The position numbers and the translations under genes are program-made. The notes below the pieces were generated by a model that ran no database searches, was not told the origin of the DNA, and saw only the letters and a list, made by a program, of their open reading frames with translations. DNA of 64,000 bases from Vitrella brassicaformis CCMP3155 (Eukaryota > Protista > Chromerida): the NCBI GenBank assembly GCA_001179505.1, contig CDMY01000770.1, forward strand, positions 62,001 to 126,000. Reading direction: 5' to 3'. How positions within the stretch are numbered: the stretch's first letter is position 1; each line of letters starts with the position of its first letter. Of this stretch, positions 3,923-48,431 are shown piece by piece.

Positions 3923-4140
3923 TCAGCATTGGAGGCAGTCGAAAAGGCAATCCTCTATGTCATCGGGGTCGTCGAATTCGTCATCGCACTCCGAACAACA
4001 GATCTGCAGATAGACAACAGACCACAGATGAGTACGAGACTTCGTCGTGTACACATCTCACTCACGAGTTGTCCCGAAACAGGGAACGAATGACTCAGGA
4101 ACACAGCCAGGACCACGCTGACAAACCACAGGAACCTCAT
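3923..4140 (-). CDS. Small secreted six-cysteine acidic peptide (module 1 peptide), 51 aa
   Basis: Exon 4140-4066, a gtgagt...ctgcag intron (4065-4004) and exon 4003-3923 give MRFLWFVSVVLAVFLSHSFPVSGQL-ICCSECDDEFDDPDDIEDCLFDCLQC*. It has a hydrophobic signal peptide and a CC-x2-C-x12-C-x3-C-x2-C core. Confidence 0.8.
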
Positions 4141-4239: not shown

Positions 4240-7200
4240 ATGCTGCTTGGAGGTTGGTTCATTGTGGTGATCATCCTTCTGAGTCAATGGGAGAGGCGCC
4301 AGGGTGCTGTGGCTCAGTTCACGACCGCCTGTCTGAGCAACAACACGAGAGAGACCGACGACGGACAGTCAACCAACACAAACGCAGACTGCCAGGCGGG
4401 TAAGGACAACAGAGGCGCACTCAACAAACAGTTGGCTGTGAATGGCCTCGCTTACTTCAGCCGTGGACCCTGACGGTGAGATATTTTCGAGTTGTGCGGA
4501 CAATCCGCTGCTGCCCATCCTCGATGACCCCGACCTGGGCAACTTCGGCCAGTGCTTCTATGAGGAGAACGCCCAGGAAAAGCTCAAGGAGCAACAGACA
4601 GATGCGCTGAACGATGAGGACTCGGATACTTTCGGCACTGTCACTGCGACTGGGGGCAACCAGAGCCAGTTGTGCGGCGAGCCGAGCGGCGTCGATCGCA
4701 CAGACGTCACTGATGTGGGAACTGCGGCGCTCGGAGGGTGCGCACTGAATAATTCTGTGGTTACGGCACGATCGGAATGTGTGATGCTGTCTGTCAGTTG
4801 CCCATCGGACAAGATATGTGCGCGCACGAGCGACTCCCGCTTCTGCTACTGCATCGAGGAGCCCATTGGTCTGTTCGGCGAGGTGGCAGAAGTCTCGCGC
4901 GGCGATGTCAGCTTGACGAGGGGCGTCGTCAGCGGCCAGCCATCGTCTCTGTGTTTCCCGGCCGAGCTGGATCCTTGCTTCAATGTCGTCAACCGCTTCG
5001 CTGTGCCCTTCGACTGTGCGGACAGCCTGCCCGTTGTGGACAGAAGGGGAGAGGAGGGGCCTAATGCTGCACAGCAGAGCGTGTTTCCGTTCGCCCCGCC
5101 TCCGGTGCCGCAAGAGTCGACATTCGCGCAGATTGTGCCGGGGACCTATCTGTTTGAAGACGTACACTCCAATGCCTACCTGCCGACCATCGACAACATC
5201 GGCGAAGATGTGTCGAGCTGTATGAGGATCCAGGGCAAGAGTGACGATGATAGCGGGCTTGATGGCTTCTTTCTGGACTTGTCGTGCAATACGACAGCGG
5301 GCGTCAGCTCCACTCTTCAATTTACCTGCCCCGAGACCGGCCTCTGCTCCCAACGCGAAGAGAGGGAGCTGCAACCGGCAGTCGCCACCATTCAGGGCGT
5401 CATGCGCGTAGAGAATGCCAGCAATCCGGCATGTAAGGGAGTGGAGGCGCAGATCGAGGTCACATTGACGGGCTTTGTGGATGAGTCGGAGTCCCTCATT
5501 GCGCAGCAGTTTCACTACGACGAGCCGCAGCGGATTCTGATCATCGGAAACGACGAACAAAGCGATCTGGTCATCGCACGGGTTATCGCTATACTATCCC
5601 CCGCGGCTCACACACCTCTCGGCCTCTTGACCTTCCCCGATGACGTTCCTGAGGAATGTGATGTTCTGCTCAACGAGCGGATCTTTACGGTGACATCGGG
5701 CGAGACAGAGGCGGGCGGCATCCTTGCGCTGGCTGTCTCGGGCTACGGAAGGGATGTATCGACCAGGGGCACCATCTCAAAGGTATGCGGGATGGGCGGC
5801 GGACACCAGTACATTAGTATGTGTCTCGTTTGCCTTTACGTATCATCATCAGAAACCGTTGGAGGCCAGCGACTTCGCTTTTGACAACCAAGAGGCGTTC
5901 TGGAACTGCAGTGAGATCTGCCGGAATGCGACGGAAGAGAACACGCAAGACAGGGAAATGGGAACTGCATCAAGTGAGCAAACGGGCCTGGCGGCACCGA
6001 TCCCCATTATTCTGGGCGAAGATCTCAGCCGTGCGCTAGTTGGGGAAGTTCTTCCTACGATCTTGTTTCCCATCTATAATCCTGATGAGTCTCCACAAAT
6101 GTCGTTCAGCAGTGCTTTGATCGGGGACAGGCGGTTTGTCGTAACAAGCTTTGACGTAACGTGCTTGGACAACACGGACGCCGGCATCAAGTTCAGCAAC
6201 TCGTCGGAGGTGCGTCCGCACACTGTCTCTGTGCTGTGTACGAAGCCTCCCGACGAGGAGCGGCCGTCCCAGGAGAGAGGACCCAGATCATTCGAACTCT
6301 ACAACGCGGAGACGGGAGTGCAGCTCGATCTGATCCTGAAAGGGCAGCTGGGGCCGCTGGTCGACGGCAGAGAAGGTACACAGCGATGGACGTATCAGTC
6401 AGGCAGGGGATGACGATATATTCTTTGTTGTGCGTGTCTGGATCAGCGTTGACAAATTGCCGCGGATTCAGGCTGCAGGACCTCCCTGTTGGTGCGAACC
6501 CTGGTATTAGCTTTCGCTACGAGATAACCAACGCTAGTTTCCTTGGTGAATACGTGGGTATTGCTGTCCCGCCGGGCGATTCGCCTGAAGAAGGAGTCCT
6601 TGGAGGCGACCTATGTGTGGGTGCTCGGGTAAGAGGAAGACACAGCTGTGCGGATCGAGAGGCGGGCGAGCACAGCTTCAGCATCTCCATCCAAGTGCTG
6701 CGATCCAAGGATGATGACATGGAATCCAACTGCAGAGACAGAATTATTGCCCACTTTAATGAGACGGATGGCCTCCCAGAGAATGAAGAAGTCATCTGGG
6801 ATGAGTACTGTGAAATCAGATATGAATGCTGTAAGCAAGCCATCAGAATGGTCCCGCAGATCACTGCCATGTATTATGCCCTTGTGAGCTATCTCAGTTG
6901 AGGCGTGTCCTGAAGTGGCTCTGAATGCCTCACCTACCGCTCAGCCATCAAGTTATCGCATGATGGACGCAAGTGAAGGCTTTTGCATTAAGCTAGTCAA
7001 CGGCACGACAAACGCGGAGGAGTCCTTTGAAGCCCGGTTCAGCTGTGAAGGCGAAGGGACTGATAATGTTGCAGCTGGTTTGCGACTGGGAATCAGATAT
7101 GATGTGGAGGAGCTGGATGGACGAGTCGTGCCCTTCGACCGTTCCACGGGGAAGCCTCTGGAGCCGGCTGGCTTTGCCAATGTGGACTTCAAGGGCACAG

Positions 7201-8367
7201 TGAGACAGCTGTCTCCAGAGGAATGCGCTGGGACCCTGATGTTTGTCGAGGGTACATGTACACTCATACACACCGATGCACACACGCACACACACATCGA
7301 GAGAGAGGGAGAAAGATGCCTGCTTCTTTTGTGTTGTCCTGCAGGCACTCTAGTTGGCGCCTTGAGCTTTGATACTGTTGGCTCTGAGACTCTCGAAGAC
7401 CCTCTAGAAGAAAGATACCTCCCTGTCATCCAGCGGTCACGGATCCGGCTTGTGCCTGAGCTTTATATCACAAGTAGTGCATCCTTGGGAACTATGGACT
7501 ACACCATCATCTCTACCCCTACTGACAGGAAAGAGTGCTTCGACGTCACAGATAGGCTGACCTATAAGAAGGAGGCTACGATTGACGTTCAGCAGCCAGA
7601 TGGCACCGTCAAGGAGGAAACAATTGTCTTTCTAGCCCCCCAGCTGGATGTTCGGGATTCGGAAGAAGACAGCAATACGACCGAAGCGTTTGCTGAGTTC
7701 AGAGTCTACGATGAGAAGGATGTAAGGAGTGGAGGTTTTATTACAGAGATGGCAGGGCTGCTGCGTCAAGTCTGCGGGATCGAGGAAAGAGGTGCGACAA
7801 CTCACTGATATGCGCGCAGACTTCGTTGCTTCTTCTTGCTTTTTTACTCAGGCTCGACTGCCGTCCAGATTCAATGTCTCGCTCACAAGCCTTTCAGGCT
7901 TTTCGCCAATGAGACAGACATCGAGTTAGGGGAGAGCGAGCTGAAGTAAGCACACGACGAGAGAGGAGACCCACATGGCTTGACTTGTCGCTCTGCGTTT
8001 TTTCCCTTTTCAAGTTCCATCGCCCGAGTGCAGAGAAACGGGAGCGATCCCGACGATTTGACGCTCCAGACGCTAGCAAACTTTACCATCAGCTGCTCGT
8101 GTAACGACGTCGAGCGCATCAAGAAGGAGACCAATGGCGGGGATGGGTTCATTGTGCGGGCCATCCCTTTGTTTGTTGACATCGGCGCGAACGTTGATGG
8201 AGACAAAGTGCAGCAGCTGTGCCCCGTTCTCACCGTTTGCGGTGCGCTGATCAACTTTTTCAGAACGATAAAGAGATGGCTCTCGCGATCAACTTCGTTT
8301 TCCTTCAGATCCGCCGTCTCCTGGACACTGCGACGAGAATGACCAGGAGACGTCATCTCGTCCATGA
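4240..8367 (+). CDS. Large secreted Cys-containing beta-rich protein of unknown family, paralog 1 (10 exons, about 1,150 aa)
   Basis: Signal exon MLLGGWFIVVIILLSQWERRQGAVAQFTTACL. The GT-AG exons join in frame through LLPILDDPDLGNFGQC, CPSDKICARTSDSRFCYC, KPLEASDF, LTNCRG, EACPEV, GTLVGALSFD and SIARVQ to DPPSPGHCDENDQETSSRP*. No C-terminal TM segment. Confidence 0.85.
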
Positions 8368-8637
8368 CTGAGACCTACGGCGCGGCAAAATAGAGCTGGG
8401 AGACACCTTTCGCATGGGATGAAGGGACGGAGATTTTCCATTCTCTATAATCACATTCTCTGCGGCAAGTAATCGTCAGCCACACACGCATGTGTGACCT
8501 GCGACAAGGTACGCAGCAAAGAGACACAAAGGGTGCTCTTGCCGCCTAATTCATTGGACGAAAAGGATTCCTTTCTCGTGTGTGTCCATATACTCAGTTG
8601 CCATTCGCCATGTGTGCAGACGAAGACAGCAGTGGCG

Positions 8638-9415
8638 TAATCGACGTGTGAGCGGCTGTGAAGCACGTCAACAGATAGATACACATCTGATAGGAGGATA
8701 TCCGGATATCCATTTATGGCGTTCCTTCTGAACCTCGCTTCAAGTCAACTACCCCTCTCCGCCACCCTTCCCTCTTCCCCATCTTCACGCCTGTGAGCTT
8801 CCCCGACAGCGTGTCCGCGTTTGCCGGCGTGGTGCCCTGCGAGATCTTGCTGATGGTGCATCGGCGAGAGTCCTGCAGGCCACTACCCGACGGACGTCCC
8901 TTCTCCCTTTCGTCAATAGTCCGCTGAAGCACGAGGTGGACTGCCTTGGCAAGGGGGTTTGTCGCCGTGTCTGCTGGCAAACGCCGGGAGGGCGGTGACA
9001 CGAGCATCCGGTTGATGGTGTCATAACCTTCTCTATGTTTCTCTGTTTCTTTCTGTCATGGCATGGTTGACTGGATGTCTGTGATTGGCTGGCAGTGTTC
9101 TCGTCTGGGTTCTTTCGTGTGATGTGACCATCCACCCTAATCCACCCCCTCCCCCTTTCCCCCACCCCCTGTCCACCCTGAGTGCCTGGTACGTACGGTT
9201 CGTCTGTGTGATATGGGTCAGTTTGGGTGAGATTTTTCACGATTTCTCTTCGATGTTGTGCCTTGGTCTGCTCCCCCTCCCTGCCTGTCACCGCATATCT
9301 CTACAGTGCCTCGTACGCCAAAAGGCGACCGTTAACGCACAGACTTCCTTTCGTGCAGCCTTTGACTTAATCGACGTGTGAGCGGCTGTGAAGCACGTCA
9401 ACAGATAGATACACA
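8638..9415. repeat. Pair of identical 48-bp direct repeats (8638-8685 and 9368-9415)
   Basis: taatcgacgtgtgagcggctgtgaagcacgtcaacagatagatacaca occurs twice, 730 bp apart. Confidence 0.9.
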
Positions 9416-10009
9416 CGTATTTGTCCTGTAATTTGTCGGTAATTGCATGCATCTATGTGTCGGTAGGTCGAGACCGCAGTCTGCTGTGATGCGCCTCGCC
9501 ACCTGTGGATAGATAGGGTAGTGCGCGAGAGACGATGGCCAATGAGACACGCGCTCGTCCATTCGGCCATCGATATACACATGCGGATACATATGGCGGC
9601 GGAAGCACAGATGTATGGCTGCCTGTGAATCGGTTGCTGTTCGACCAGCAAAAATACACACGTGTGGACGTCCTGTGTATGCACGTCTGGACGTAGATAC
9701 CCCTTTCAGTGAATGAATGCATCTCATTCCGCACCATCCACAGACATGCATGTGTCCAATTGACCGTCAAACACACACATTTATGCACGTCTGCGGTGCG
9801 TGTGCATGATATTCACTGTCACTCTATCTCTGTCTTGATGCTATACATTGTAGAGTGATGCCGCAGCGGCAGGCCGAGAGCGAGACAGAGACACATGCGA
9901 ATAGACTGATGCCCGCATCAGCAAGAGACAGACAGACACACACACACACGCACCACGTCACCAATGCTGTCTGGCTGTGGTGCCGACAGATACTGTATAT
10001 TCATGTACA

Positions 10010-11906: not shown

Positions 11907-14150
11907 ATGCTTGTTGAGTTGCATTACCGCACGGGTTGGTCGAAGTGTCTGCTGCACTACTGCCCTTTCGGAGGATCATGGGAGGACGCAATCATGGAGG
12001 TGACGAGCAGAAACAGGACGGCCACGACACCATCTCGCATCAGCGTCTCATTGTGTCTGGTCTGCATGTGCATGTGCGTCTGTGTGGTGCAGGCAGACAA
12101 GCAGGGGTGGGTGAAGGCCCGTGTGGAGCTTAGTGGAGGCGGCATGGAATTCGTATTGCACAACGGACAAGGCGCATGGGACAACCCACCACCCTGGTGC
12201 ACAGAACCAACGCGCACCAGTCGAAGATACAACATTCTGTCTTGGCTCTCTGTGAACGTCTGCGTGCAGGTATGGCCACCCGAACTATCGGCTCGATCTG
12301 CCGTCCCCCCTTCCCCCGGCCCCTCTGAAAGTCACGGTGATGAATGGGCGCGTCTGTCTGCTCGACGGGCCTCGCGTGTTGGTGGCCACCGACCTTGACG
12401 GCACACTTGTGGGCCACGATGACTACCTCGAGGCATTCAAGGAGCACTGGACGGCCTACCACGCATGCAGAGGATCCATCCTGGTGAGGGCCACAGAGGC
12501 AAAGCACGTGCATGCATCAACGGGGAGATCATCCCTCGCTCTTTTTTCCGCTTCGGCAGGTGTATTCGACTGGCCGGAACTTGAAGGACTTTCTTCGCGT
12601 GGCGTGTGAGAAGAAGCTGCTTCGCCCCGACTATGTGGTGTGCGGCGTGGGGACTGAGATCTACACCTTTCCCGACTCGCTCCCGCCCGAGGTGGGCACC
12701 GCTCGGCTGCCGCAGCACCTGGCTGCTCTGGCGAGCAAACACCAGAAGGAGGGCAAGCCGCCACTGGAGGAATTCGACCGTAAGCACGATAGAAAGAAAG
12801 AAGAAGGAATACGTGTGGACGTGCATTCTGTCCTGTTCCTTGGTGTTGCCAGCCACTGTGCAGGATGGCGACATTTGCTATCCGTCGTGGTGTCAGTCGC
12901 GTGCTGGAGCTGTGTTCGATGAGGAGTGGCTGAGCAAGATGGTCGATGAATTTGACCGACCCGCCGTCATTGACGACATACACGTACGCACAGAGGGCAT
13001 GTCGGGGCGGGGCTATGGCAGCCATAATTTGCTTGGCTCGTTTCCTTCAGTCGAAGTTTTCCTGGCTGGATCCGAAGGGCAATCTGTATCATGACCCTTT
13101 CCGCGTGTCGGCCATGGCCAAGGCGGACGACGTCTACACTGACGGACACATTGACGTGAGAAACGAAGGGACATATCTGCTGTGTTGCATTTCATGCGTC
13201 CATGGATGTGATGTGTGGTGTATGCAGTCGTTGCGTCATCACTTCAAGGGCTGCCACATCATCGTCAGCGGCGGGGGCGAGTTCAGGTACTCAGACAGAC
13301 AGACTCACACAGACAGAGACGGGCCGTCTCTTCCTATCGCGTGTCGTTGGGATCTGTGCCATGTGGGTGTGTTGCAGGTATGTTGACGTGACGCCTCACT
13401 CGGCCGGCAAGCTGCGGTCGCTCCTCTACTTGATGGAGAAGCTGTCGTTCGGCCCTCGAGAGGTGCGCACGGCAAAAGCAGCACACATCAGCAGACACAT
13501 TGTATCGCTTCATGTGTGCAGACATTGGTGTGCGGCGATTCGGGCAATGACCTCTTTATGTTCCTGCACCCCGACATCCGCGGCTGCTGCGTCGCCAACT
13601 CACAGCCAGACATGATCGCATTCCTCAAGGTTGGCAGCACACAACAAAACGCATAGCCAGAGGGCAGCGAGCCACACACATCAGGGATGCATGCCTCCTC
13701 AACGTAGGGCGACGCCGAGGAGATGGCCAAGCACCCGCACCTGCAGAACCTGCACGCCCACCACCACGCCCCGCCGCCTCCCTCCAACCCGTCGGCGTCC
13801 ACCAAGGCCACACCCTCATCGAGCGTCCAAGGCGGCGCATCGCCCACCCACAACGACCCATCACTAGAGCCCGAGGCCGAGACCATGACTGAGGAGGACC
13901 GACGGGGGAACAATGCCGCGGCCGCCGAAGACGACACCGAGGAAGAGGACACGCCAGACCCACACAAGAAATCACAGCATGTACGTGTGTGCGGAGAATG
14001 GGGATGGGGCACGGAGGGATGGCGGCGTGTCCGTCTGTCTGTCGTATCAATCAGGTGTGTTTTGCGAGTCGCGATTGCGCTGGTGGCATCTTGGAGTCGC
14101 TGGTTCACCACGGATTCGACAAGGCCGAGAATGTCCGCTTTGCCTACTAG
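11907..14150 (+). CDS. Starch-binding module (CBM25/26/53-like) fused to a sucrose-phosphatase-like HAD-IIB hydrolase
   Basis: The N-terminus LHYRTGW...MEFVLHNGQGAWDNPP is a starch-binding-domain signature. HAD motifs follow: VATDLDGTLVG, VYSTGRN, PDYVVCGVGTEIY, AGKLRSL, CGDSGND and C-terminal FASRDCAGGILESL..HGF. About 10 GT-AG exons, stop at 14148-14150. Confidence 0.85.
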
Positions 14151-14165
14151 CCGAATGAATGCTGC

Positions 14166-14615
14166 CGTGGTGCGAATGTGTAGGCAGGCTGATGTGGCTG
14201 GTCCACGAGATTGTTGTGTGTAGAATCAGTGAGTAGGGAGGATGATAGTGCCTGCTGTGTGCTATTCAGTGAGGTGAGAGCATTCTTTTTGAGTGCGGCA
14301 GTTTTGATCTGACAGTCAGTGGACATGGCACGCCGAACTCACATCAAGACCAACATTAACATAAGGGAAATGACGACAACATAACCAAGAGCCGCCCCAA
14401 GACCACCACACATACACACAGGCTGTCCACACGTGCACACAATAGTATTCTAATTGGCGATTCCGATTCAGTAGACGCACACGTCACTATGGCACAATGA
14501 GATGACACAGCAGCCCGCCACAGTACCCAACTCACTCATACGCGTACACAGTGTGAGTGCCTCTTGGACACCCATATATATCGAATCGAGAACAAATACA
14601 CAGACACTAGCCCTA
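14166..14615. repeat. Duplicated 3' flank of the peptide genes (second copy at about 20189-20650)
   Basis: cgtggtgcgaatgtaggcaggc...gagattgttgtgtgtagaatcagtgagtaggg...tattctaattggcgattccgattcag...gagtgcctcttggacac is shared by both loci. Confidence 0.85.
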
Positions 14616-14658
14616 TCCTCAGACGTACCGATGGCTCGATGGCTGCACGCACGCATCA

Positions 14659-15157
14659 TCAGTTCAGTTGGCGCAGAGGGGCGTCGCGTGGTGCAGTGGC
14701 CTCAACACAGTTGGGATTGCAGTTGGCGAAACAGGCCGATGTAGTGCAGCTGGACGCCGACGTCACCCACACGCATAAGAAGACAGAGCCAGCAGCCAGC
14801 CAATTGGGGGATGAACTTAGACAGCCTACGAGCATTACTCACCTGCTGCAGCACGGCTGGAGGTGGCGCAGAAGAGCGTCATCGCCTGCATCCACCAATG
14901 GCCGAGAAAGGCACAGATAGTGGATTTCATGAGTTGCTCCTGTGTCGGCCGGCGTCGTGTTGACTCACCGCCATGGATGTCGAGCGTCTGCTGGCCGCTC
15001 GCTCCTCTCAGCACATTCCCGACACGGTCATTCTGCACCACATCACACTACAGCTGACTTCGCAGTGTCGGCCTTCCGCTCGTGTGTGTCTCACCTGTGC
15101 GAGTGAAGGCGTGGCCGGCATAGCCAACAGCATGCAGGCAAACCACAAGAGGCTCAT
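14659..15157 (-). CDS. Secreted six-cysteine peptide precursor (module 2 peptide), 86 aa, 4 exons
   Basis: Exons 15157-15095, 15032-14969, 14885-14843 and 14749-14659 (all GT-AG) give MSLLWFACMLLAMPATPSLAQ-NDRVGNVLRGASGQQTLDIHG-GDDALLRHLQPCCS-SCTTSACFANCNPNCVEATAPRDAPLRQLN*. Confidence 0.85.
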
Positions 15158-15290
15158 CTCCGACCTCTGATCTCGTACGGGAAGGTAAATTCATGCCCCC
15201 TTCGCAACGGCAACGAGGAAGGCATCAGAAATGACCACGAGGCTCAGTCACTTGCCGGATGCACGATGGAGTGGTGGCTGATTGAATCGC
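15158..15290. promoter_or_regulatory. Putative bidirectional promoter, module 2
   Basis: 133 bp between divergent ATGs. Contains GTAC (15175), GTAAA (15185) and CGCAACGG (15203). Confidence 0.55.
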
Positions 15291-18200
15291 ATGTGGGGAG
15301 GCTGGCTGATTACAGTACGTGTAGCGGTCATCTTGCTGAGTCAATGGGAGGAAAGAAGGGCGCTGGCTCAGTTCACGACTGCCTGCCTCACGGGCAACAC
15401 CTTTGTTGAAGGCAGGTCAGAGGCCAACCGAAACTGTCTGCCACGTGAGGTGCACACGCGGTGTGATGCCGCGCCACGCTCCTTTCGCTGACTCATTCTG
15501 TTTTGTTTTCCTTCAGCTGTTGAACTGCTGCCGCCTGGGCTTCCAGGCAGTGACGAGCCACCTATGAGATGCGAGCCCAATGCGCTGCTTCCCATCGTCG
15601 ATGACCCCGAGCTCGGCAACTTCGGGCAGTGCCTCTACAATGACGCCGCCGAGGAGTGGCTGCGGATCCAACAAGAAATCGCTCTCAACGACGCGAACAG
15701 ATCGGACACGACGGGTGATGTGACAGCGTCGGGCGAGAACCAATCAATTCTCTGTGGCGAGCCGAGCGGCGTCAATCGCACAAACATCACTGACCTGGGC
15801 ACAGCGGCACTGGGAAGGTATGCACAGCCGATAGGTGATGATGTTCACTAACATTGTGTCTGCCTGTCTGTCAGTTGTCCATCCGATAAGCCCATTTGCG
15901 CGCGGACGAGTGAGTCCCGCTTCTGCTACTGCATCGAGGAGAGCGTGGGTCTGTTTGGCGAGGTGGCAGACGTCGCGCAAGGCGATGTCAACCTTGTCAA
16001 GGGTGTCGTTAGCGGTCAGCCATCGTCCCTGTGCCTCCCTCCTGAGCTGGATCCTTGCTTCAATTCCGTCAACCGCTTCGCTGTGCCGTTCGACTGTGCC
16101 GGCACTCTGCCCGTCGTCGAGAGAAGGGAAGACATTGGGCCAGATGCACGGCAGCAGAGCTTCAAGCCGAACGAGCCGCCCCCAATGCAACAAAATGCGA
16201 CGTTCGCCCAGCTGGTGCCCGGCACTTATCTGTTCGAAGACGTGCACACCGACGCCTACCTGCCAACCATCGAGAACGTGGGTACCAACGTGTCGAGCTG
16301 CATGAGGATTCAGGGCAAAAAGAACGACAGCAATGGGCTTGATGACTTCTTCCTGGACCTCTCATGCGACACGGCAGAGGGCGTCAGCGTGACCCTCCAG
16401 TTCACCTGTCCTCTTACCGGACTGTGTTCTAATCGCACCGAGAACAAACTCATGCCGGCCGTTGCAACGATCCAAGGAGTCATGGTTGTGGAGAAGGCCA
16501 GCAACCCGGCGTGCGAGGGAATTGAGGCGCAGATCGAGGTCACTTTGACTGGCTCGGTGGACGAGTCGGAGTCCCTCATTGCCCAACAATTTGACTACCA
16601 GGACCCGCAGCGGATTCTCATCATCGGCAACGAGACACAGGACGACCTCGTCATTGCACGGACTGTCGTCATACTATCACCTGCGGCGCACACGAGCCTC
16701 GGCGTCATGACATTTCCGGATGATGTGCCGGAGGGGTGTGATGTTTTACTCAACGAGCGGGTCTTTTCAGTGACTTCAGGAGAAACAAGAGCAGGCGGCG
16801 TCCTTGCGTTCGCCACGTCGGGCTATGGAAGAGACGTGTCGACGAGCGAAACCTTCCCCAAGGTACTTGATGATACATTTACACATACACGTGTGCCTGA
16901 ATTTGTCTTTGCATCCTCAGAACCCCTTGGAGGCCAGCGAGTTCGCCATAGCCAACCGAGAGGCGTTTCGGGAGTGCAGTGAGATCTGCGTTGAGGCGGC
17001 AGAGACCTACTGGGAACAGCAGGAGGATGGTCTTGCGGTGTCCAATCAGAAGGAGTCGGGATTCAGTCTGGGCGCAGACCCCGAACGTCAGCTGCTCGGC
17101 GAGAAAGTTCCGACGATTCACTTTCCCCTCTTCTGGCCCGAAGAATCGCCAGACCTGTCCTTCGGCAGCGTCTTGACCGGGGACTTCTTCTTCGTCGAGG
17201 AGGGGCGGCTGAACGACACTTTAGAAAATTGCAGCGTGACAGAGTCCATGCTCGACAACATACCCATTCCCGTGTCTGTCTCTTGCGCCGTCGGCACTGA
17301 TCCCATCGTGCCCTTCCGATCTTTTGAGCTCTTCAACGAGGAGACAGATGTGCAGCTCGACTTGGTGTTGAAGGGCCAATTGTCAAACCTTCAGGACAGA
17401 GAGGGTACATGTACTAGGCAGTCAGAACTTATCATCCAACATGTCCAATGTCTCTGTCTGTCTGTCTATCTGTCTGTCGGTATGTATGACAGTGCTCACA
17501 AATTGTCGCGGACCGAGATTGCAGACGTTTCCGTCCGGCTTTGGAGAGTTTGACGCGGCCTTTCTTGCAGAACTTGCCCGTACCGACATCGTTGGCGAAA
17601 TCACGGCCGTCGCTCTGGCGCCCAACGGGGGGGTTCTCGGAGAGGACACGTGCGTTGCAGCCCAACTAAGGCAATCAAGTAACTTCTCGTGCCGGCATGA
17701 CGGGAAGGATTTAAAAGGCGACCACAACGTCGTGGCAAGCGTCAAAGTGGTGAGAAGGGAAGGTGATGAAACGTCGGTGATATGCAAAGAAACAATAGCA
17801 AAACTCGACAACGATACGATAGCGGAAGACGACGTCACAGTCATTTGGGAACAGGAGTGCGAGATAGGATTTGAGTGCTGTAAGCTACAAGAAGAGGCGT
17901 CACTCGCCTGTCTGCTGTGTACATCCCTGTGGTTTTCTGTCTCAGTTGAGGCATGCCCCGATGCTGTTCTGTCTGCCCCACCCACAGCACAGCCGTCGAT
18001 ATACCGCATGACGGATATCCAGTTCAACAGCTCAGCTCTCGAAGACGGCGACGAACCACCACCTGTCGACCGCTGGTGTCTCCAACTAATAGCCGACACA
18101 GAGACTAAGACTTCTGCTACTGATAAATTCGCGCCCACAGACGAGTCGACGTATTACTTTAGCTGCGAAGGAGGGCTCGCTGATGTGCAAGTGAGGATCC

Positions 18201-19588
18201 GCTACGATCTGGACAGCTTGGATGGTCGCATAGCAGCAATCAATTATTCCAGCAACGATCAGCCGCAGGTGGGCTTTGCGAATGTTGATATCAAGGGGAC
18301 GGTGCGGCAAGTGTGGCCCGAGGAATGCAATGGCACATTGATGTTCGTGGAAGGTAGGTACGGACACAAGGCAGAAATCGCCCTCTCATAAGTTCCTTTG
18401 CTCCCCTGTGTGTTTGCTGTGTGTAGGGACGCTCATTGGTGGTGTTTCCTTCGATCCAGTGGGCAACGAGACCCCGGACCCTGGCAAAGAGAACACCACG
18501 AGGTTCGCACCTGCGATTGCGGACTTGGGGCCTGGTGGGAACCGCACAGGGATCCTTCTTCCGGAAACGTTTGTCACTTCAAGCGTACCGATCGGAAACA
18601 TGCAGTACGCCGTCCTGAATGCCAGCGATGAGTGTGACCAAAGTGCCGCCCAGAGGCTCACGTACAGGCGAGACGGCTTCACGGATCAGGGTGTTGGCTT
18701 CTTTTCTATGCCTGAATTAGAGGTAGGCACAAGCACACATACAATTGCGTCCCCCTCTGGTGCATTTGATGTTCAGATTAAGGACTCATGGGACTCAGAG
18801 GATAATGAAACCGTTCTAGAGCTCAACAGCTTCTTTAGAGTGACTGAGGAAGGAAGGAACATCTCGGAATTCACGTCGTCAATCGCAGGACGGCTGACAG
18901 AAGTGTGTGACATTGGGATTGAAGGTAAGTCAAGAGCACACATTCTCCGCCCTCGTCACGACACTCCAGTACCTGTCGTCTTCTCAGGGGTGCCAGCAGT
19001 GCAGATTCAGTGCCTTCCCCGTGAGCCCATCGTCGTTGATAGCATCGGTCTCTTCACCGAAACTGACGTCAACAACATCAACACCACCAACCTGACAATG
19101 ATCGAGGGCATCGACCTGACAAGGATCGGAGACATCGAGCTGAGGTGACGCGCAGATCTGACAACATTCCATGAAGACACATGTGTTAACTATGTTGCTG
19201 TTTGGCGTTTTTGCGTTGCGTCTCTGCCCTGCAGCACTATCGCGCGAGTGCTGATCAAAGATGGCGATGATGTCAATAGTACCCTCCGCCTCTCAGTCCC
19301 ATACAGCCTCGCATGTTCCGACAACGATATCGAGCGCATCAATCAAGAGACCGACGGGCGCGGCGGGTTTATCGTGCGGACCATTCCATTGACTGCCGAT
19401 GTGGCTCGGATTGACACTGGCGACCTCGTTTTGCGTGTGGAGCAGGATTGTCCTGTGCTTTTAATCTGCGGTACATCGGATGGAAGAAACAGAAGGGGAG
19501 GAGCTCCAAACAGCTTGCCGCCTGTGTGTTTCGATTGTCTCTTGCTGCAGAAGATGCTAAACCCACCCCTGGACCCATGCAGCCATGA
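15291..19588 (+). CDS. Large secreted beta-rich protein, paralog 2 (11 exons)
   Basis: Signal exon MWGGWLITVRVAVILLSQWEERRALAQFTTACL. It is colinear with paralog 1 (LLPIVDDPELGNFGQC, CPSDKPICARTSESRFCYC, NPLEASEF, LTNCRG, EACPD, GTLIGGVSFD) with matching intron positions, and ends EDAKPTPGPMQP*. Confidence 0.85.
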
Positions 19589-20188
19589 GCAACTGAGAAT
19601 CGAGGTGATGTGAGTGTGTTATGGTGTGAAGTGCATTCGAGGCCCCCAATGGGTGGATACACCTCTGTTCAGCCGCACCTCCTGCTGCTACAAGGTCAGG
19701 AGACATCACGCGACAGATGCGAGACTTCTCTCATGTACGTTTTCCCAGATCTCTTCGTTCGTTGTCGGTGTCCCGCTGACCCATCTGCAATGACGGCGGG
19801 CTTATTTGTCTGCTTGTCACCTTTTTGTGCCTCTGCGGGGGCGGGTGCATGCCCTGTGATTTGTGCACATAAGAGGATAATCGTTTGACCCGCCGTTCTC
19901 TCGCTGCTGCTATACTGCAAGAGGTTTGCGGGGACGGCTATGTCAATTGATAGACAGCATTGCATCGCTTCGTGGTGTTGGGTCCGTCGATGGTTTTGTT
20001 ATGAGTGTCCACATGCAATTCAACTCAGATGACTCGTTTTCGAATTGGTGTCAACACACACACACACACACGTGCTTGCCATCCATCAATCGTATAGTGC
20101 CAATGAACAGTTTTCGAGTTGGAGCGTCTATGAATATACTCCATCATCATCTCCCACAACAAACACGAGCTATACCAGCCAACTAGCA

Positions 20189-20650
20189 CGTGGTGCGAAT
20201 GTAGGCAGGCTTATGTGGCTGGTCCACGAGATTGTTGTGTGTAGAATCAGTGAGTAGGGTGATTGTCCCTGCTGTGTGCCTGCCGTGTGCCATTCATGCG
20301 TATGTCAGTGAGGTGAGAGCATTCTTTTTGAGTGCGGCAGTTTTGGTCTGACAGCCAGTGGACATGGCACGCCGAATTCACACTGACACAAACATTAACA
20401 TAAGGGAAATGACGACAACATAACCAAGAGCCGCCCCAAGACCACCACACACACAGGCTGTCCACACATGCACACAATACGATGAAGGACGCGCAAGAAG
20501 TATTCTAATTGGCGATTCCGATTCAGCAGACGCACACGTCACTATGGCACAATGAGATGACACAGCAGCCCGCCATAGGGCCCGTACCCAGTATGAGTGC
20601 CTCTTGGACACGCAATCGAATCGAGAACAAATACACCGACACCTGGCCCG
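20189..20650. repeat. Duplicated 3' flank of the peptide genes (first copy at about 14166-14615)
   Basis: Shares blocks with 14166-14615 and lies immediately downstream of the module 3 peptide gene. Confidence 0.85.
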
Positions 20651-20679
20651 ACCGTCGTACGACGTTTCCCCATCGGAGG

Positions 20680-21386
20680 TCAGTTGGCGCAGCCGGGGTT
20701 GCAACTAGCCCAACAACCCGATGAGGTGCAGCTGAAGGAGAGAGCCAGTCAGCCAGATGAGCCATGCACATACTGTGTCAGATACCAGTGGCGCTGACCT
20801 GCTGCAGCAGGGTGGAAGGCGGCGCAGAGGTGCATCGTCTGGGGCCTCGACACACCCGGGATTGCAATTTGCCCAACAAGACGGTGAGCTGCAGGAACTG
20901 CAGCACTGTAGGCGTCGCACAGGTGTGTCGTCGTGGGCACAGCCAGGGTTGCAGTTCGCAAAGCAGGAAGGCGTAGTGCAGCTGCAAAGATAGCACCACA
21001 GAAAAGCAGGCAGGTGAATAGAGAGGGGGCAATTCATCGATGGAAAAGTACCCGCTACAGCACTGCAGGCGGCGCAGAGGGGCGTCGTCGCCTGCACGAA
21101 GGAACGGCGAGGGAACGCACAGCATGACATCGTGTGAACAGATGGACGGAAGAGTGCTCGTGCGTCGTCGTGCGCGTGTGGCTGACCTTGGTGGACGTCG
21201 TTTGTCTGCTGGCCACTCAGTCGCCCCCGCAGCGCAGTCCCGCCAGACACCTCCTGAGCCAATGTGCACAACATACAGCTGACACACTGTGCCGCACGTG
21301 TGATTGCGTCCCTCCCTCACCTGTCCGAGTGCAGCACTCGTCAACACAACAGCCACAAAGAAGCAGGCACACCACATGAGCGTCAT
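20680..21386 (-). CDS. Multi-core secreted six-cysteine peptide polyprotein (module 3 peptide), 135 aa, 5 exons
   Basis: Exons 21386-21321, 21253-21187, 21091-21052, 20981-20799 and 20731-20680 (all GT-AG, in frame) give MTLMWCACFFVAVVLTSAALGQ-EVSGGTALRGRLSGQQTNDVHQ-GDDAPLRRLQCCSG-CTTPSCFANCNPGCAHDDTPVRRLQCCSSCSSPSCWANCNPGCVEAPDDAPLRRLPPCCSS-CTSSGCWASCNPGCAN*. Confidence 0.9.
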
Positions 21387-21591
21387 GACGACAGAGAGGA
21401 GCGGTTCTACCAAAGCGAGCTCACGTACACCGCGTAAATTTCCACTCTGGCCGCAACGGAACTTGCTCGAGCTGTGACAGACGATGAGACGGAAGCCCAC
21501 AGGCACACACGAGCTCAAGTGCCTCGTGAGGGCCCGAGTTTGCTTCAGAAAGGGCAGGGCTGAATGACCAAGCGGACCAAGCATCGGTCGC
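21387..21591. promoter_or_regulatory. Putative bidirectional promoter, module 3
   Basis: 205 bp between divergent ATGs. Contains GTAC (21425), GTAAA (21434) and CGCAACGG (21452). Confidence 0.55.
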
Positions 21592-22716
21592 ATGCTGCGG
21601 TGGCTTCTCGTGGGTGTGTTGGTCGTATTGTTGAGTGAGAGGGAGAGGAGAGGTGCCGTGGGTCAGTTCACGACAGCCTGCCTCTCGGGCAATACCTTCG
21701 GACCTAGCGCTGAAGCCAGCAAAGACTGCCTGCCACGTGAGCACTCGAGGACAGGCTCCCTCCGTTGATCATTCTCTGTTTTGTGTGTGTTTCCAGCTGT
21801 CAACCCGTTGTTACAACTACCTGGATTTCCAGGCAGTGATAAACCCCTTTCGAGATGTGAACCCAATGCTCTGCTGCCCATCGTTGACCACCCCGAGCGG
21901 GGCAACTTCGGCCAGTGCCTCTACAATGAGAACGCCGAGCTCTTGCTGCAAATCCAACAGGAAATCGCCCTCAATGACAACTTGAATAATAGCAGGAGCT
22001 CAGATACGGCGGGTGACGTGACTGCGTCGGGCGAGAATCAGTCCATTTTGTGCGGGCAGCCCAGCGGCGTCAATCGCACAGACATCACTGATCTGGGAAC
22101 GGCAGCTCTCGGAAGGTACACACACGTGATTGGTCGTGATGGCAACGTCGGTATGCTGTCTGTCTGCCTGTCTGTCAGCTGCCCATCCGATAAGCCCATT
22201 TGTGCCCGCACGAGCGAGTCCCGCTTTTGCTACTGCATCAAGGACGACAGGGGTTTGTTTGGTGAGGCGGCCGAGGTCTCACATGGCGATGTCACCCTCG
22301 CCAAGGGTGTCGTCAGCGGCAAGCCATCGTCCCTGTGCCTCCCTCCTGAGCTGGATCCTTGCTTCAATGCCGTCAACCGCTTCGCCGTGCCCTTCGACTG
22401 TGCGGACAGCCTGCCTGTCGTCGAGAGAAGGGAAGACATTGGACCAGACCCAAGAAACCAGAGTTGGCTGCCGAACGAGCGGTTTCCAGTGCCGCAAGAG
22501 TCGACGTTCGCCCAGCTGGTGCCCGGCACTTATCTGTTTGAAGACGTGCACTCGAATGCCTACCTCGATACCATCAAGAACGTGGGCACCGGTGTGTCGA
22601 GCTGCATGAGGATCCAGGGCAAGAAGAATGATGATAGTGGGTTCGATGACTTCTTCTTGGACCTCTCGTGCGACACGACAGAGGGCGTCAGCGTGACCCT
22701 CCAATTCGACTGCCCC
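21592..22716 (+). CDS. Large secreted beta-rich protein, paralog 3 (5' part, cut by the assembly gap)
   Basis: MLRWLLVGVLVVLLSERERRGAVGQFTTACLSGN..., then LLPIVDHPERGNFGQC and CPSDKPICARTSESRFCYC...GVSVTLQFDCP, followed by Ns. Confidence 0.85.
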
Positions 22717-23016
22717 NNNNNNNNNNNNNNNNNNNNNNNNNNNNNNNNNNNNNNNNNNNNNNNNNNNNNNNNNNNNNNNNNNNNNNNNNNNNNNNNNNNN
22801 NNNNNNNNNNNNNNNNNNNNNNNNNNNNNNNNNNNNNNNNNNNNNNNNNNNNNNNNNNNNNNNNNNNNNNNNNNNNNNNNNNNNNNNNNNNNNNNNNNNN
22901 NNNNNNNNNNNNNNNNNNNNNNNNNNNNNNNNNNNNNNNNNNNNNNNNNNNNNNNNNNNNNNNNNNNNNNNNNNNNNNNNNNNNNNNNNNNNNNNNNNNN
23001 NNNNNNNNNNNNNNNN
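22717..23016. other. Assembly gap (300 N)
   Basis: Run of N. The sequences on either side belong to unrelated genes. Confidence 0.99.
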
Positions 23017-33488: not shown

Positions 33489-36400
33489 ATGAAGATCGTC
33501 GTGCTCGCGTGCCTCCTCTCCGTGGCGGCCTATGCCCAGGGCGACCCCATCACCTTCAGTGACGAAGAGCTGAGCCGTGCCGTGAGCAACACGAGACTCT
33601 TCCTTCGTGGCCTCAGAGAGGCCCTCCAAGTTAGTGAGCTCCGGCGGCTCGAGACGCCCCTGAGTGATTTGAGGTGGCTGAAGGCTCCTGGCTGTCCGCC
33701 CAACCGAGGGCAGCCCAACTGCTGCGACGCCTTCACGAGAATGGAGGAGCTCTTCGACGATCAGACAATGCCTGAAGGCTGTACCGATGCCTTTGAATTG
33801 AACTCGACAACCCTGGACGAGACAAAACTCGTCAACGTCTGCGGAACTGACGGCTGCGTGGATGAGCTGCAGGAGGCTATCTACAACAAAACGAGAAAAA
33901 GAGGCGCGGGGTGCGCCTTCTATCGCTCCGTGCGTCGTCAGGTGGGCCGAAGAAAGAAGCAAGAGTTTCGATCTTATCCGTTGGCCCAATCGTTCAGTAT
34001 GACGCCATATGCAAGAAGGATGCGAACGACAACTACTGCTGGCCCGACCTCGATTACCATATTGAGCTGATCACGCGCTCTCTGAAGGGGGAGGCTGTGA
34101 TAAACGACACGAATCTCGACGACCTTTATGCCCGTGGTAAGTTCACCGGGCCGACATTTGTCTGCTGTATGATTGTCGCTGTTTTCACCCACAGGCAGCT
34201 GCTTCTACAGCAATCTCCGGTTTGTCAAGAAGCGCCTGACCGCCGAGTGGATAGCGAAAAACTGGCTGTCGAACATCCGAGCAATGAACTTCTTCCTGCC
34301 GCAGGTAGGTGGCATGATGTCATTCACGCATGGGGCTCGTTCGTGCTCACAACTTACTTCTTGGCCTGTCCATGTATATCTGCATATGATGTGCGTCGCA
34401 GCTGGCTGTCAAGATTGGCACTACCTACTGTTGGCCCAAGGCCGTCGAGATCCTCGCCCGTGGACCGGAAGGGATGCAAGAGGTGAGTTGAGGATCTGGT
34501 GCTGCCATGGATATGTATGTGTATGCCAGCCACACGCACGCAGACGAACATGTGTACATGTCTCTCTATCTCTCTCTCTCTCTCCCTCTGTGTGTGTGTG
34601 TGTGTGTGTGTGTGTTCCTCTGGTGCAACCGCCATGCATTCATTCGAGCAGTGGTTAAAGAAGAAAGTGAATCAGATGTGGACTGAGCCCGAGGACTTCT
34701 GCAGCGAGGCATGCAACCCCTATATGCTGCGCATTGTTGCGACTTTCGGGTGGCTGGCGGTCAGCCCGACAGATATCGACGACCTCGACGACCCGGACGA
34801 TTTTGTGGGGGAGCCTTCTGGCGACAGCCTGTGGGAGACCCTCAGCCCTGAGGGCAGAAAGTTTGCTGGTGTGGCACGCACAACAAGGTTCACATGCATG
34901 AAGAACGTCAATGGTACCTACTGCGGTGAGCCAATGAATCGGTGGGACATGTCTCCCTTACAAATATAATATATATAACTCACCTCGGCCTGTCCCTTTA
35001 TCTGGATATCAGGGAAAGCGATCCGCGAAGGCGGCGACCTTGGCGCAGTAAGCACAGACACACATTTTAGTTAAGCATACCTGCCGATTCGTTCCTCCCT
35101 TGCAGGACGACGATGATGTCACGTTCCCCACTGAAGCCGCCAGTGAAGCCCCGGTTAGCACGACAGGTAAGGCCGCAAATGACACACATATACACATGCG
35201 ACACATCGCAATGTCCTCTAGGCGCAGCTCCTGTTGACGGCATGTCCTCTAGCACCGAGGACATCACTCAGGGAGAAATCAGCACCAGCACCGAAGAGAT
35301 CTTTCAAGGGGTCAAAAGCACCACGGAGGATGTCAGCAGCGAGTCACCAGACCCCGACGACGACATGTCATCGACTACAGACTTCCCCTCGCCCTCTCCC
35401 TCGCCCTCCGGTGGTCGCCTGCTCGAGGCCCTCTACGATGAGTGGGCTGCTGATGACCCTGCCCTCCGCTCTCTCCTCAGGGTCGAAAGGGGAGAGCTCT
35501 GGGACTGGCTGCGGCGGGTGGCGAACGCCTCTGGTACAGGCGGACAACGAATGTAGAGAGGGAGAACGGGAGACGGTAGCTTGACATCACGTTGGTGTCT
35601 CCGTCTTGCAGAGTACTGCATGGACATCCGGCAGATGGTTGACGACTACGGCTGCTGCGGGGCTGCCTTCTTCGGTAAGTGCTACTAACCCCGCGGGGAC
35701 ACGTAGGCTGACACTCACATGCACGCTGACTGACGCAGAGTGGAAGGCCGACATGCTCCGCATCGGAGCCATCGACGGTGACGAGACACCCGCTGCACGG
35801 CGTCGGGAGGCAAGGTACATCAAGACTCAGCTCGCCGTCGCCCCAGCCATCTGCAACAGGCGCCTCGACAGGACATGCGCCGCGGGTCGAGCCCTCAAGT
35901 AAGGCACGGACACAACACGCAAAAAGACAACATCCGTTTACGCTGGTTGTACTGTGCAGACGGCTGAAGCGCCTGAAGGCAGTGGCAAAAATCGCGGGTT
36001 TCAATTGCGCTCAAGCGCGAGCAAAGCAGGAAAAATTCGACGACTTCATTTCCAAACTCGAAGAACAGCTGGTGACTAACGGACGGACCATTGCGCCCGT
36101 TTCCACGCCTGTCTCTCTCTCTTCCTCTGTCCCCTTCTCTGTGTTCTCTGTGGGTGTACTTGTTCGTGCAGATGGCCCTAGGTTTGGCGGAGACGGACTC
36201 GGACATCAGCATCACTATCTGTGACTACAATCCTGACCACGAGCTGGTCAAACAGACAGACAGATACACATACACACAGATGGATGGATGAGCTGTGTTG
36301 GAATGTATGTGTACAGGTGGACCTGGGCACAGGAAAGAAGCCGCCTCCAACCACGGCCCCGCCGGCCGGCGGCGGGGTGCCTTTGTCCCCGCCCAACCGA

Positions 36401-47839: not shown

Positions 47840-47890
<51 letters not shown>

Positions 47891-48431
47891 TCAGTGCCTT
47901 GTGTGGCACGTGCCGCTCTCACGCAAGCACCCCGCCTCCCCACCGATGTGTGAATCCGTACCGCCTGAACTCCTTCTGTGCGGCCTCCCACGTGGCGTAT
48001 TTGATCCACGAGCCGATGTGGTGCCGCTGACGACGCAGCGTGTCCTCAAACTCCTTGCGCTTCCGAATCCTGAGACCACACACCACCACACCACACCAAA
48101 CCGCACCGCACCATACAAACAAGTGGCGCCTCACGCGACATGAGTCAGTCGTGTGTGCGTTGCGTGTCCTGACGCACCTGTATTCCGCCAGCTCGTCATC
48201 GTCGACGATTCGTTGTCTGGGTCTGCGCGCCTCCTCGCCCTGCCTGTCGACGGCCTCGCGCAGGAGCTGCTCGGCGGTGATCTGGATGGGAGCCGGAGTC
48301 TTGTTCTTGACCTGAATCAACCACACACAAGACGGACACAACGAGCACGATGGAGTGAGTCGGTTGGTGTCTTGCTCGTGGCTGGTTTGGTCTGCTTGGT
48401 TACTCAGACTCACCGCTGCCTGCTTGCCCAT
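44682..48431 (-). CDS. CRNKL1: Crooked neck / CLF1 HAT-repeat splicing factor
   Basis: [26 protein letters not shown]...[12 protein letters not shown]...[73 protein letters not shown] and [12 protein letters not shown]. Confidence 0.95.
47841..47890. repeat. Compound (CA)15(GA)10 microsatellite, representative of many intronic CA/GT/GA/CAGA/GATG tracts
   Basis: Directly visible. Similar tracts occur at about 3205, 10585, 23970, 34570, 43060 (CACACC) and 53744. Confidence 0.95.

Follow-up and report, generated by a model that had tools for sequence, protein, structure and literature searches.

A 64,000-nucleotide stretch of the genome of Vitrella brassicaformis CCMP3155 (contig CDMY01000770.1, positions 62,001 to 126,000; hereafter the window) contains a five-exon gene, confirmed by transcripts, on the minus strand at 21386-20680. 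It encodes three cysteine-rich modules in a single chain, each preceded by a DDxPxRxL spacer. V. brassicaformis is a free-living algal relative of malaria parasites, and the spacer carries a candidate RxL cleavage site of the kind recognised by plasmepsin V/ASP5-type aspartic proteases. The product is almost certainly real, secreted and disulfide-rich, the last two properties being predicted from its leader and its cysteines. It is proposed here to be a prepro-polypeptide whose spacers would be cut by such a protease, releasing peptides that would act outside the cell; taken as a whole, this mechanism stands at about an even chance.

The gene model was built by joining GT..AG-bounded pieces on the minus strand and was then checked against contigs of sequencing runs: the RNA-type runs X1 and X2 (study P1) and X6 (study P2), and the DNA-type run X3, which comes from the same sample as X6. 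The feature coordinates are given in Table 1. All four exon joints (20731/20799, 20981/21052, 21091/21187 and 21253/21321) were found exactly in X1, X2 and X6 contigs from the two studies, the joint across intron 1 being carried by X2 and X6 contigs. On the plus strand each skipped intron is bounded by CT..AC, hence by GT..AG in the direction of the gene. The X3 contig is collinear with the genome and unbroken over 20546-21096. By sequence alone the start of exon 2 is ambiguous (there are five in-frame acceptors), and it is the RNA contigs that decide it. These contigs extend at least from 21406, upstream, to 20450, downstream; their word depths cannot rank expression. The spliced product is letter for letter identical to the database entry P0001 (135 amino acids, "unnamed protein product", Vitrella brassicaformis CCMP3155). 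The original prediction, made from the DNA letters, had proposed five exons spliced in frame. Transcripts do exist, and they are spliced exactly as it proposed rather than being absent or joined differently. In X6, a minor NAGNAG acceptor 3 nt downstream, at 21250, accounts for about 1% of the depth and drops Glu23.

Residues 1-22 of P0001 are hydrophobic (the mean Kyte-Doolittle hydropathy of residues 4-18 is 2.13) and are encoded exactly by exon 1. The pro-region is followed by three units, each consisting of an eight-residue spacer and a core of 19-20 residues with the cysteine spacing CC-2-C-4-C-3-C-3-C. Units 1 and 2 are linked by AH and units 2 and 3 by VEAP, and AN forms the C-terminus of the protein. 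The cores are free of charged residues (net charge 0), are 30-32% cysteine and have one aromatic residue each. The RRL triplets lie at residues 51-53, 80-82 and 111-113, downstream of the predicted endoplasmic reticulum (ER) signal, and the first RxL copy is found 29 residues past the predicted signal cleavage. The layout that had been predicted, a signal peptide and short pro-region followed by three CC-C-C-C-C cores each preceded by DDxPxRRL, matches P0001 residue by residue.

Relatives of the protein were found only in Vitrella. An exhaustive HMMER search of 1.84 billion representative sequences with a four-unit profile returned two true relatives, P0002 and P0003, both from this organism. 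Three further matches were taken to be unrelated cysteine-rich proteins: an EGF-like repeat protein and two proteins of very large size, one of them from a sea anemone. A word-indexed search of 5.8 billion proteins with P0001 and a 189-amino-acid open frame returned P0001 and P0002 only. No match was obtained in a word-based protein search with the 60-amino-acid exon 4, and a metagenome scan for relatives of that exon gave 597 pattern matches, none of which was confirmed. At E-values up to 10, Pfam contained no family for any member of the peptide family and the PDB sequence search returned no chain. The automatic UniRef names "4Fe-4S ferredoxin-type domain" and "SREBP regulating gene protein" are supported by no profile search. 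Over the collections searched, the gene is shown to be restricted to V. brassicaformis.

The two relatives each have a single core. P0003 (paralogue A) is located in the window; its core is interrupted by the same intron as in the target gene and its spacer is DDALLRHL. Its tail, VEATAPRDAPLRQLN, holds the vestige of a second spacer (RDAPLRQL), after which come Asn and the stop codon. P0002 (74 amino acids, scaffold C297) has one uninterrupted core behind an RRL spacer. Over the first 326 nt, counting introns, it matches the target at 95.7% identity; the core beyond them diverges. P0002 is also transcribed: loose ends and a variant contig in X6 match its 5' end and exon 2. The exon 1 leader is conserved in both relatives, as is the pro-region block LRG..SGQQT.D[VI]H.G, and both retain the order of leader, pro-region, spacer and core.

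The Vitrella genome that was searched (G000) comprises 72,700,666 bp in 1064 scaffolds. It contains a decayed relic 6 kb upstream of P0002 (G000:C297:119374-119537; L048, about 1350-1565), in which an exon-2-like piece and an intron are followed by GDDTPLRRL and an early-ending core without its first three cysteines. The relic suggests birth-and-death turnover in the peptide family. A genome search with the pattern C[FW]A[NS]CxxxC found the known members and a match on scaffold C795 (FTCCRCFANCLATC, L025), in which the spacing differs and which was put down to chance.

In a codon-level alignment of five units across the three genes (ten pairwise comparisons, which are not independent), synonymous divergence was near saturation (pS 0.63), while nonsynonymous divergence was much lower (pN 0.18, pN/pS 0.29). 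All six cysteines are invariant in all five cores, and four of them are written as TGC in some units and TGT in others. The spacer residues D1, D2, R6 and L8 do not change either, while their codons vary synonymously; four different codons are used for the leucine. The pN/pS ratio is 0.23 in the spacer versus 0.46 at the non-cysteine positions of the core. These codon patterns show purifying selection acting on the cysteines and the spacer, and the spacer clearly appears to be under constraint equal to that of the cysteines. The unit pattern is not a product of chance, because it recurs in two paralogues with the cysteines invariant despite nearly saturated synonymous divergence. Spacer position 7, which would be P2 if the chain were cut after Leu, is Arg or His (Gln in the vestige). 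A variable P2 next to a fixed P3 Arg and P1 Leu fits RxL recognition and not a dibasic site.

About ten loci of the pepsin family were found in the Vitrella genome. One of them, L034:1468-2631 on the minus strand (G000:C688:132600-133091), matches the plasmepsin V structures 4zl4 and 8tyf at E 4e-39, whereas the next aspartic proteases match it at only E 3e-7. The alignment spans the DTGS motif and the cysteine-rich nepenthesin-type insert. A 388-amino-acid open exon of this locus holds both catalytic D[TS]G motifs, and further exons encode the C-terminal part. At L044, a different aspartic protease locus, the matches are to cathepsin D and plasmepsin X. Judging by these matches, Vitrella encodes a clear plasmepsin V/ASP5-type (clade-D) aspartic protease. 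Plasmepsin V acts on RxL and Toxoplasma ASP5 on RRL, in both cases with the cut after Leu; ASP5 can also cut internally and near the C-terminus, and the P2' residue is non-essential for it (PMC4764566). Within the literature searched, nothing beyond a Babesia protease phylogeny joins Vitrella to plasmepsin V or PEXEL, and RxL processing in chromerids appears to be undescribed there.

The proposed processing would begin with entry of the protein into the ER by means of the exon 1 signal peptide. There each uncharged module of 19-20 residues, about 30% of them cysteine, would form three disulfides. The DDxPxRxL spacer before each module would be the processing site, cut most likely after Leu, in the ER or Golgi, by the plasmepsin V/ASP5-type enzyme. 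The released peptides would start with Gln (cores 1 and 2) or Pro (core 3), their acidic C-terminal tails would then be trimmed or retained, and the peptides would act extracellularly as ligands or toxin-like effectors. Cleavage into separate peptides is slightly more likely than not. A plasmepsin V-like enzyme as the cleaving agent is a tentative assignment, a little short of evenly balanced, and a ligand or toxin-like role is conjecture. The uncharged cores do not resemble cationic membrane-active antimicrobials. A wider and rather unlikely proposal is that, in the free-living relatives of Apicomplexa, the chromerid plasmepsin V/ASP5 orthologue is a general proprotein convertase with RxL spacers as its substrates, freeing secreted peptides from precursors with one or several copies, and that the PEXEL/TEXEL export signal of the parasites descended from a propeptide-processing site.

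A number of observations weigh against RxL processing. The residue at P2' is Cys (units 1 and 2, P0002) or Pro (unit 3, P0003), whereas the PEXEL pentamer prefers E, Q or D there. Toxoplasma ASP5 requires Arg at P2, but this position varies and paralogue A has His (RHL). If the cut falls after Leu, core 1 would keep a tail of 10 residues (AH plus DDTPVRRL) and core 2 one of 12 (VEAP plus DDAPLRRL), and no second site for trimming them is evident. Cutting at RRL would free N-termini only, so the release of three peptides of about 20 amino acids would need a second trimming step. The exact DDxPxRRL 8-mer is not enriched in the genome (20 occurrences versus 29 in a reversed control), although the same pattern search did turn up the C297 relic. 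Two of the distant cousins described below (the one at 4140-3923 and L084) are without any spacer, and in a third (L081) the motif is RRT. The lack of a genome match to the kexin/furin P-domain PF01483 at E 0.01 would speak for RxL processing, but it comes from an exon-by-exon search of this intron-rich genome, in which a split domain could escape. Structure prediction did not help: AlphaFold with a three-sequence alignment gave an unusable model of P0001 (pLDDT 44), and the ESM Atlas held no usable match for it (Atlas model pLDDT 0.47). The overall interpretation in the original prediction stands in part. Its gene, splicing, prepropeptide layout and preferential conservation of cysteines among homologues held, and the spacer proved to be conserved as well, but three peptides of about 20 residues would not result from an RRL cut alone.

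It is also conceivable, though unlikely, that the protein is secreted and remains uncut, either as a tandem cysteine-rich protein resembling SCREPs or as a component of a wall or matrix, and that DDxPxRxL is a linker or docking motif. Secreted cysteine-rich proteins whose several domains stay uncleaved are an established architecture (PMC6262176). The retention in paralogue A of a spacer-like tail with nothing behind it would agree with this, as would the lack of an evident C-terminal trimming site. However, the single-core paralogues have the motif precisely where pro-region and core meet, the classic position of a propeptide site, the motif's invariant residues are R and L at RxL spacing rather than a general linker composition, and it survives in cousins whose cores have diverged past alignment. 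If the chain is cut, the enzyme could instead be a subtilisin-type protease acting after Arg-Arg, which would leave an N-terminal Leu, or a subtilase similar to site-1 protease. Four of the five units aligned from the three genes have Arg-Arg, but the pair is not conserved (RH in P0003 and in the cousin L083, RQ in the vestige) and P1 Leu is more conserved. Animals and fungi as a rule process their multi-copy peptide precursors at dibasic sites, and subtilases without a P-domain are numerous in Vitrella (about 70 exon-level PF00082 matches); the P-domain itself, however, went undetected in the exon-by-exon search, and site-1 protease is said to prefer Arg at P4 (RxxL/RRLL), where the spacers have Leu, Val, Pro or Ser. 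Cleavage by such proteases is quite improbable.

The cysteines might also bind a metal or a cluster, as in 4Fe-4S ferredoxin-type or metallothionein-like proteins, perhaps in a plastid reached through a bipartite leader. This is very improbable. There is no Fer4 or metallothionein match in Pfam even at E 10, the CxxCxxCxxxCP motif is absent from P0001, and the N-terminal signal leader would direct the protein into the oxidising secretory pathway. What speaks for metal binding is the cysteine content of about 30%, the CC and CxxC motifs, the small loops rich in S, T, G, N, P and A that resemble metallothioneins, and the ferredoxin-type name that UniRef gives to P0001 automatically. As for the plastid, the predicted signal cleavage is followed by Glu and not by the aromatic residue that is reportedly usual for complex-plastid transit peptides, and what follows the leader is a stretch of only 23 residues, some of them acidic. 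Heat-stable enterotoxin and guanylin show a superficial likeness by eye (CC..C and CNPxC), with no Pfam match.

Plants and animals are known to have multi-copy precursors of cysteine-rich peptides, but to our knowledge no such precursor has been reported from chromerids or other relatives of Apicomplexa. The multi-core cysteine-rich propeptide is thus of a known kind, and the conserved RxL motif before each copy is what is unusual here. The closest functioning parallel is the Ib-AMP polyprotein of Impatiens balsamina, whose precursor is said to have acidic propeptides between the peptides and N-terminal Gln. In this plant several cysteine-rich peptides of about 20 amino acids (CC, CxxxC) are derived from one transcript and precursor (PMC4695807), and the target likewise encodes multiple CC-bearing peptides of that size. 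The comparison is one of described features, not of sequence. Ib-AMPs are basic and have four cysteines (two disulfides), whereas the target cores are uncharged, have six cysteines, belong to an alveolate and lie downstream of an RxL motif. PEXEL/TEXEL substrates share with the target an RxL/RRL motif after a signal peptide, which in parasites is cut after Leu. The known ones are single-site effector or dense-granule proteins of parasites, in contrast to a multi-copy peptide precursor. We know of no chromerid in which RxL cleavage has been demonstrated.

The target shares the CC-C-C-C-C order, the length of about 20 residues and the prepro organisation with conotoxins of framework IV, which is described together with the A superfamily in PMC3397437. 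This likeness had been pointed out in the original prediction with no claim of homology, and rightly so: the cysteine order matches, but the loop lengths differ, and conotoxin homology was found neither in Pfam (no family at E up to 10) nor in the PDB (no chain) nor in the exhaustive HMMER search (no mollusc toxin). The alphaA and kappaA conotoxins are said to have longer first loops than the target. Conotoxin precursors are moreover single-core and come from an unrelated taxon, whereas the target has three cores. Among alveolates, the pheromones of Euplotes are secreted, made as prepro-proteins and hold three disulfides in about 40 residues. They differ from the target in having one peptide per precursor, another cysteine spacing, a helical fold and no RxL spacer, and similarity to them was found by none of the searches run. 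SCREPs also consist of tandem small disulfide-rich domains in one secreted chain (PMC6262176). They stay intact and have short neutral linkers, whereas the target has an acidic RxL spacer that is also present at the propeptide junction of the single-core paralogues.

If the Vitrella plasmepsin V-like enzyme does cut here, the protein would be a natural substrate of compact size, with three sites in a chain of 135 residues. The gene would then allow the role of this protease family before parasitism to be tested, which bears on the origin of protein export in malaria parasites and Toxoplasma. The predicted peptides (uncharged, about 2 kDa, three disulfides, relatives in Vitrella only) would be a new scaffold from a reef alga.

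Table 1. Features of the peptide gene and its neighbours, in window coordinates
Feature	Position	Strand	Description	Basis
Target open reading frame	20680-21386	-	ATG at 21386, stop TGA at 20682-20680	
5' untranslated region (UTR), minimum extent	21387-21406	-	true transcript start not readable from contigs	X2 contig reaches 21406
Exon 1	21321-21386	-	residues 1-22, signal-peptide-like leader ending ...SAALGQ	sequence, RNA joint
Intron 1	21254-21320	-	67 nt, GT..AG	absent from X2 and X6 contigs
Exon 2	21187-21253	-	pro-region, residues 23-45	sequence, RNA contigs, P0001
Intron 2	21092-21186	-	95 nt, phase 1, directly before spacer 1	RNA contigs
Exon 3	21052-21091	-		
Spacer 1	21066-21089	-	DDAPLRRL, residues 46-53, candidate RxL cleavage site	sequence
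Core 1	20939-21065	-	residues 54-72, QCCSGC...CNPGC, interrupted by intron 3	sequence, RNA contigs
Intron 3	20982-21051	-	70 nt, after CCSG of core 1	RNA contigs
Exon 4	20799-20981	-		
Spacer 2	20909-20932	-	DDTPVRRL, residues 75-82	sequence
Core 2	20852-20908	-	residues 83-101, intronless	sequence
Spacer 3	20816-20839	-	DDAPLRRL, residues 106-113	sequence
Core 3	20689-20815	-	residues 114-133, PPCCSSC...CNPGC, interrupted by intron 4	sequence, RNA contigs
Intron 4	20732-20798	-	67 nt, same place in core 3 (after CCSS) as intron 3 in core 1	RNA contigs
Exon 5	20680-20731	-		
Tail	20680-20688	-	Ala-Asn and stop TGA	sequence
3' UTR, at least this far	20450-20679	-		RNA contigs cover 20450-20731
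Paralogue A (P0003)	14659-15157	-	86 amino acids, four exons, one core	sequence
Distant cousin	3923-4140	-	51 amino acids	gene model from sequence only
Large secreted protein gene, 5' part	21592-22716	+		sequence; contigs from 21457

More distant cousins of the peptide genes are also present in Vitrella. In the 51-amino-acid cousin, an acidic CC-C-C-C-C peptide comes directly after a related signal exon, and both the pro-region and the RxL are missing. Four others (L080, L081, L083 and L084) were modelled in the same way, from the genomic letters. L080 (G000:C257:65200-68400) reads ...GQD/DTLPSRRL-QF-DDEPRPM-QFQG-ICCTDC..., L083 reads ...GQD/DDFPPRHL-QFQG-VCCSSC... and L081 reads ...GQN/DRPFLRRT-Q...VCCDDC..., while L084 is a 10-cysteine peptide without a spacer. 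When these inferred cousins are included there are nine spacers, with Arg at P3 in all nine, Leu at P1 in eight and Gln at P1' in six; the cores are barely alignable. A phase-1 intron directly before the spacer is common to all spacer-bearing members (the target, its paralogues A and B, L080, L081 and L083). The only multi-core member seen is the three-core target gene. In the inferred exon 2 of L080 the spacer is seemingly duplicated in tandem (DTLPSRRL-QF and DDEPRPM-QF), the second copy being without Leu.

A large multi-exon gene, which encodes a signal-peptide protein, has one copy head-to-head with each of the target, P0003 and the 51-amino-acid cousin. Further head-to-head pairs involve P0002 on scaffold C297 and the inferred cousins on scaffold C257. 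By these gene models the target is a member of a larger, Vitrella-only set of six-cysteine peptide genes paired with the large gene. The ATG of the target at 21386 faces that of its large neighbour at 21592, about 200 nt away. In the window, copies of the large gene start near 4300-4485, 15326 and 21592 (spans 4300-10000, 15326-20100 and 21592 onward). The copy beside the target is cut by an assembly gap (300 N) at 22717-23016. The genome contains at least 15 close copies (68-80% amino acid identity over a 345-amino-acid exon) plus more distant ones, and copies are found on scaffolds C257, C297, C502, C764 and C481. Many of the copies have a small six-cysteine peptide gene as their head-to-head partner. 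The exons of the large protein had no Pfam or Atlas match, and a single-sequence AlphaFold model of the 345-amino-acid exon was unusable (pLDDT 31.5). That each peptide and its head-to-head large secreted protein form a cognate pair is conjecture.

The window also has short repeats, exact or nearly so: a 48-nt direct pair with 100% identity at 8638-8685 and 9368-9415, and an element of about 50 nt whose copies, inverted and direct, lie at 34563-34615, 47841-47891 and 50419-50481. An Rfam search of 14000-21700 gave one sub-threshold snoRNA-like match only, and the folding stability of the 3' UTR was not above that of shuffled sequences (z = 0.97). The 3' flank of the target (20189-20642), to which the 3' UTR belongs, is conserved: over about 450 nt it is 81% identical to the flank of paralogue A (14166-14607), and more than 90% identical inside aligned blocks. 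This flank has two copies only in the whole genome and is therefore not a transposon. It could reflect gene conversion or a functional UTR. Coding exons and introns of the two genes are far less conserved than this flank, whose indels are non-triplet in length.

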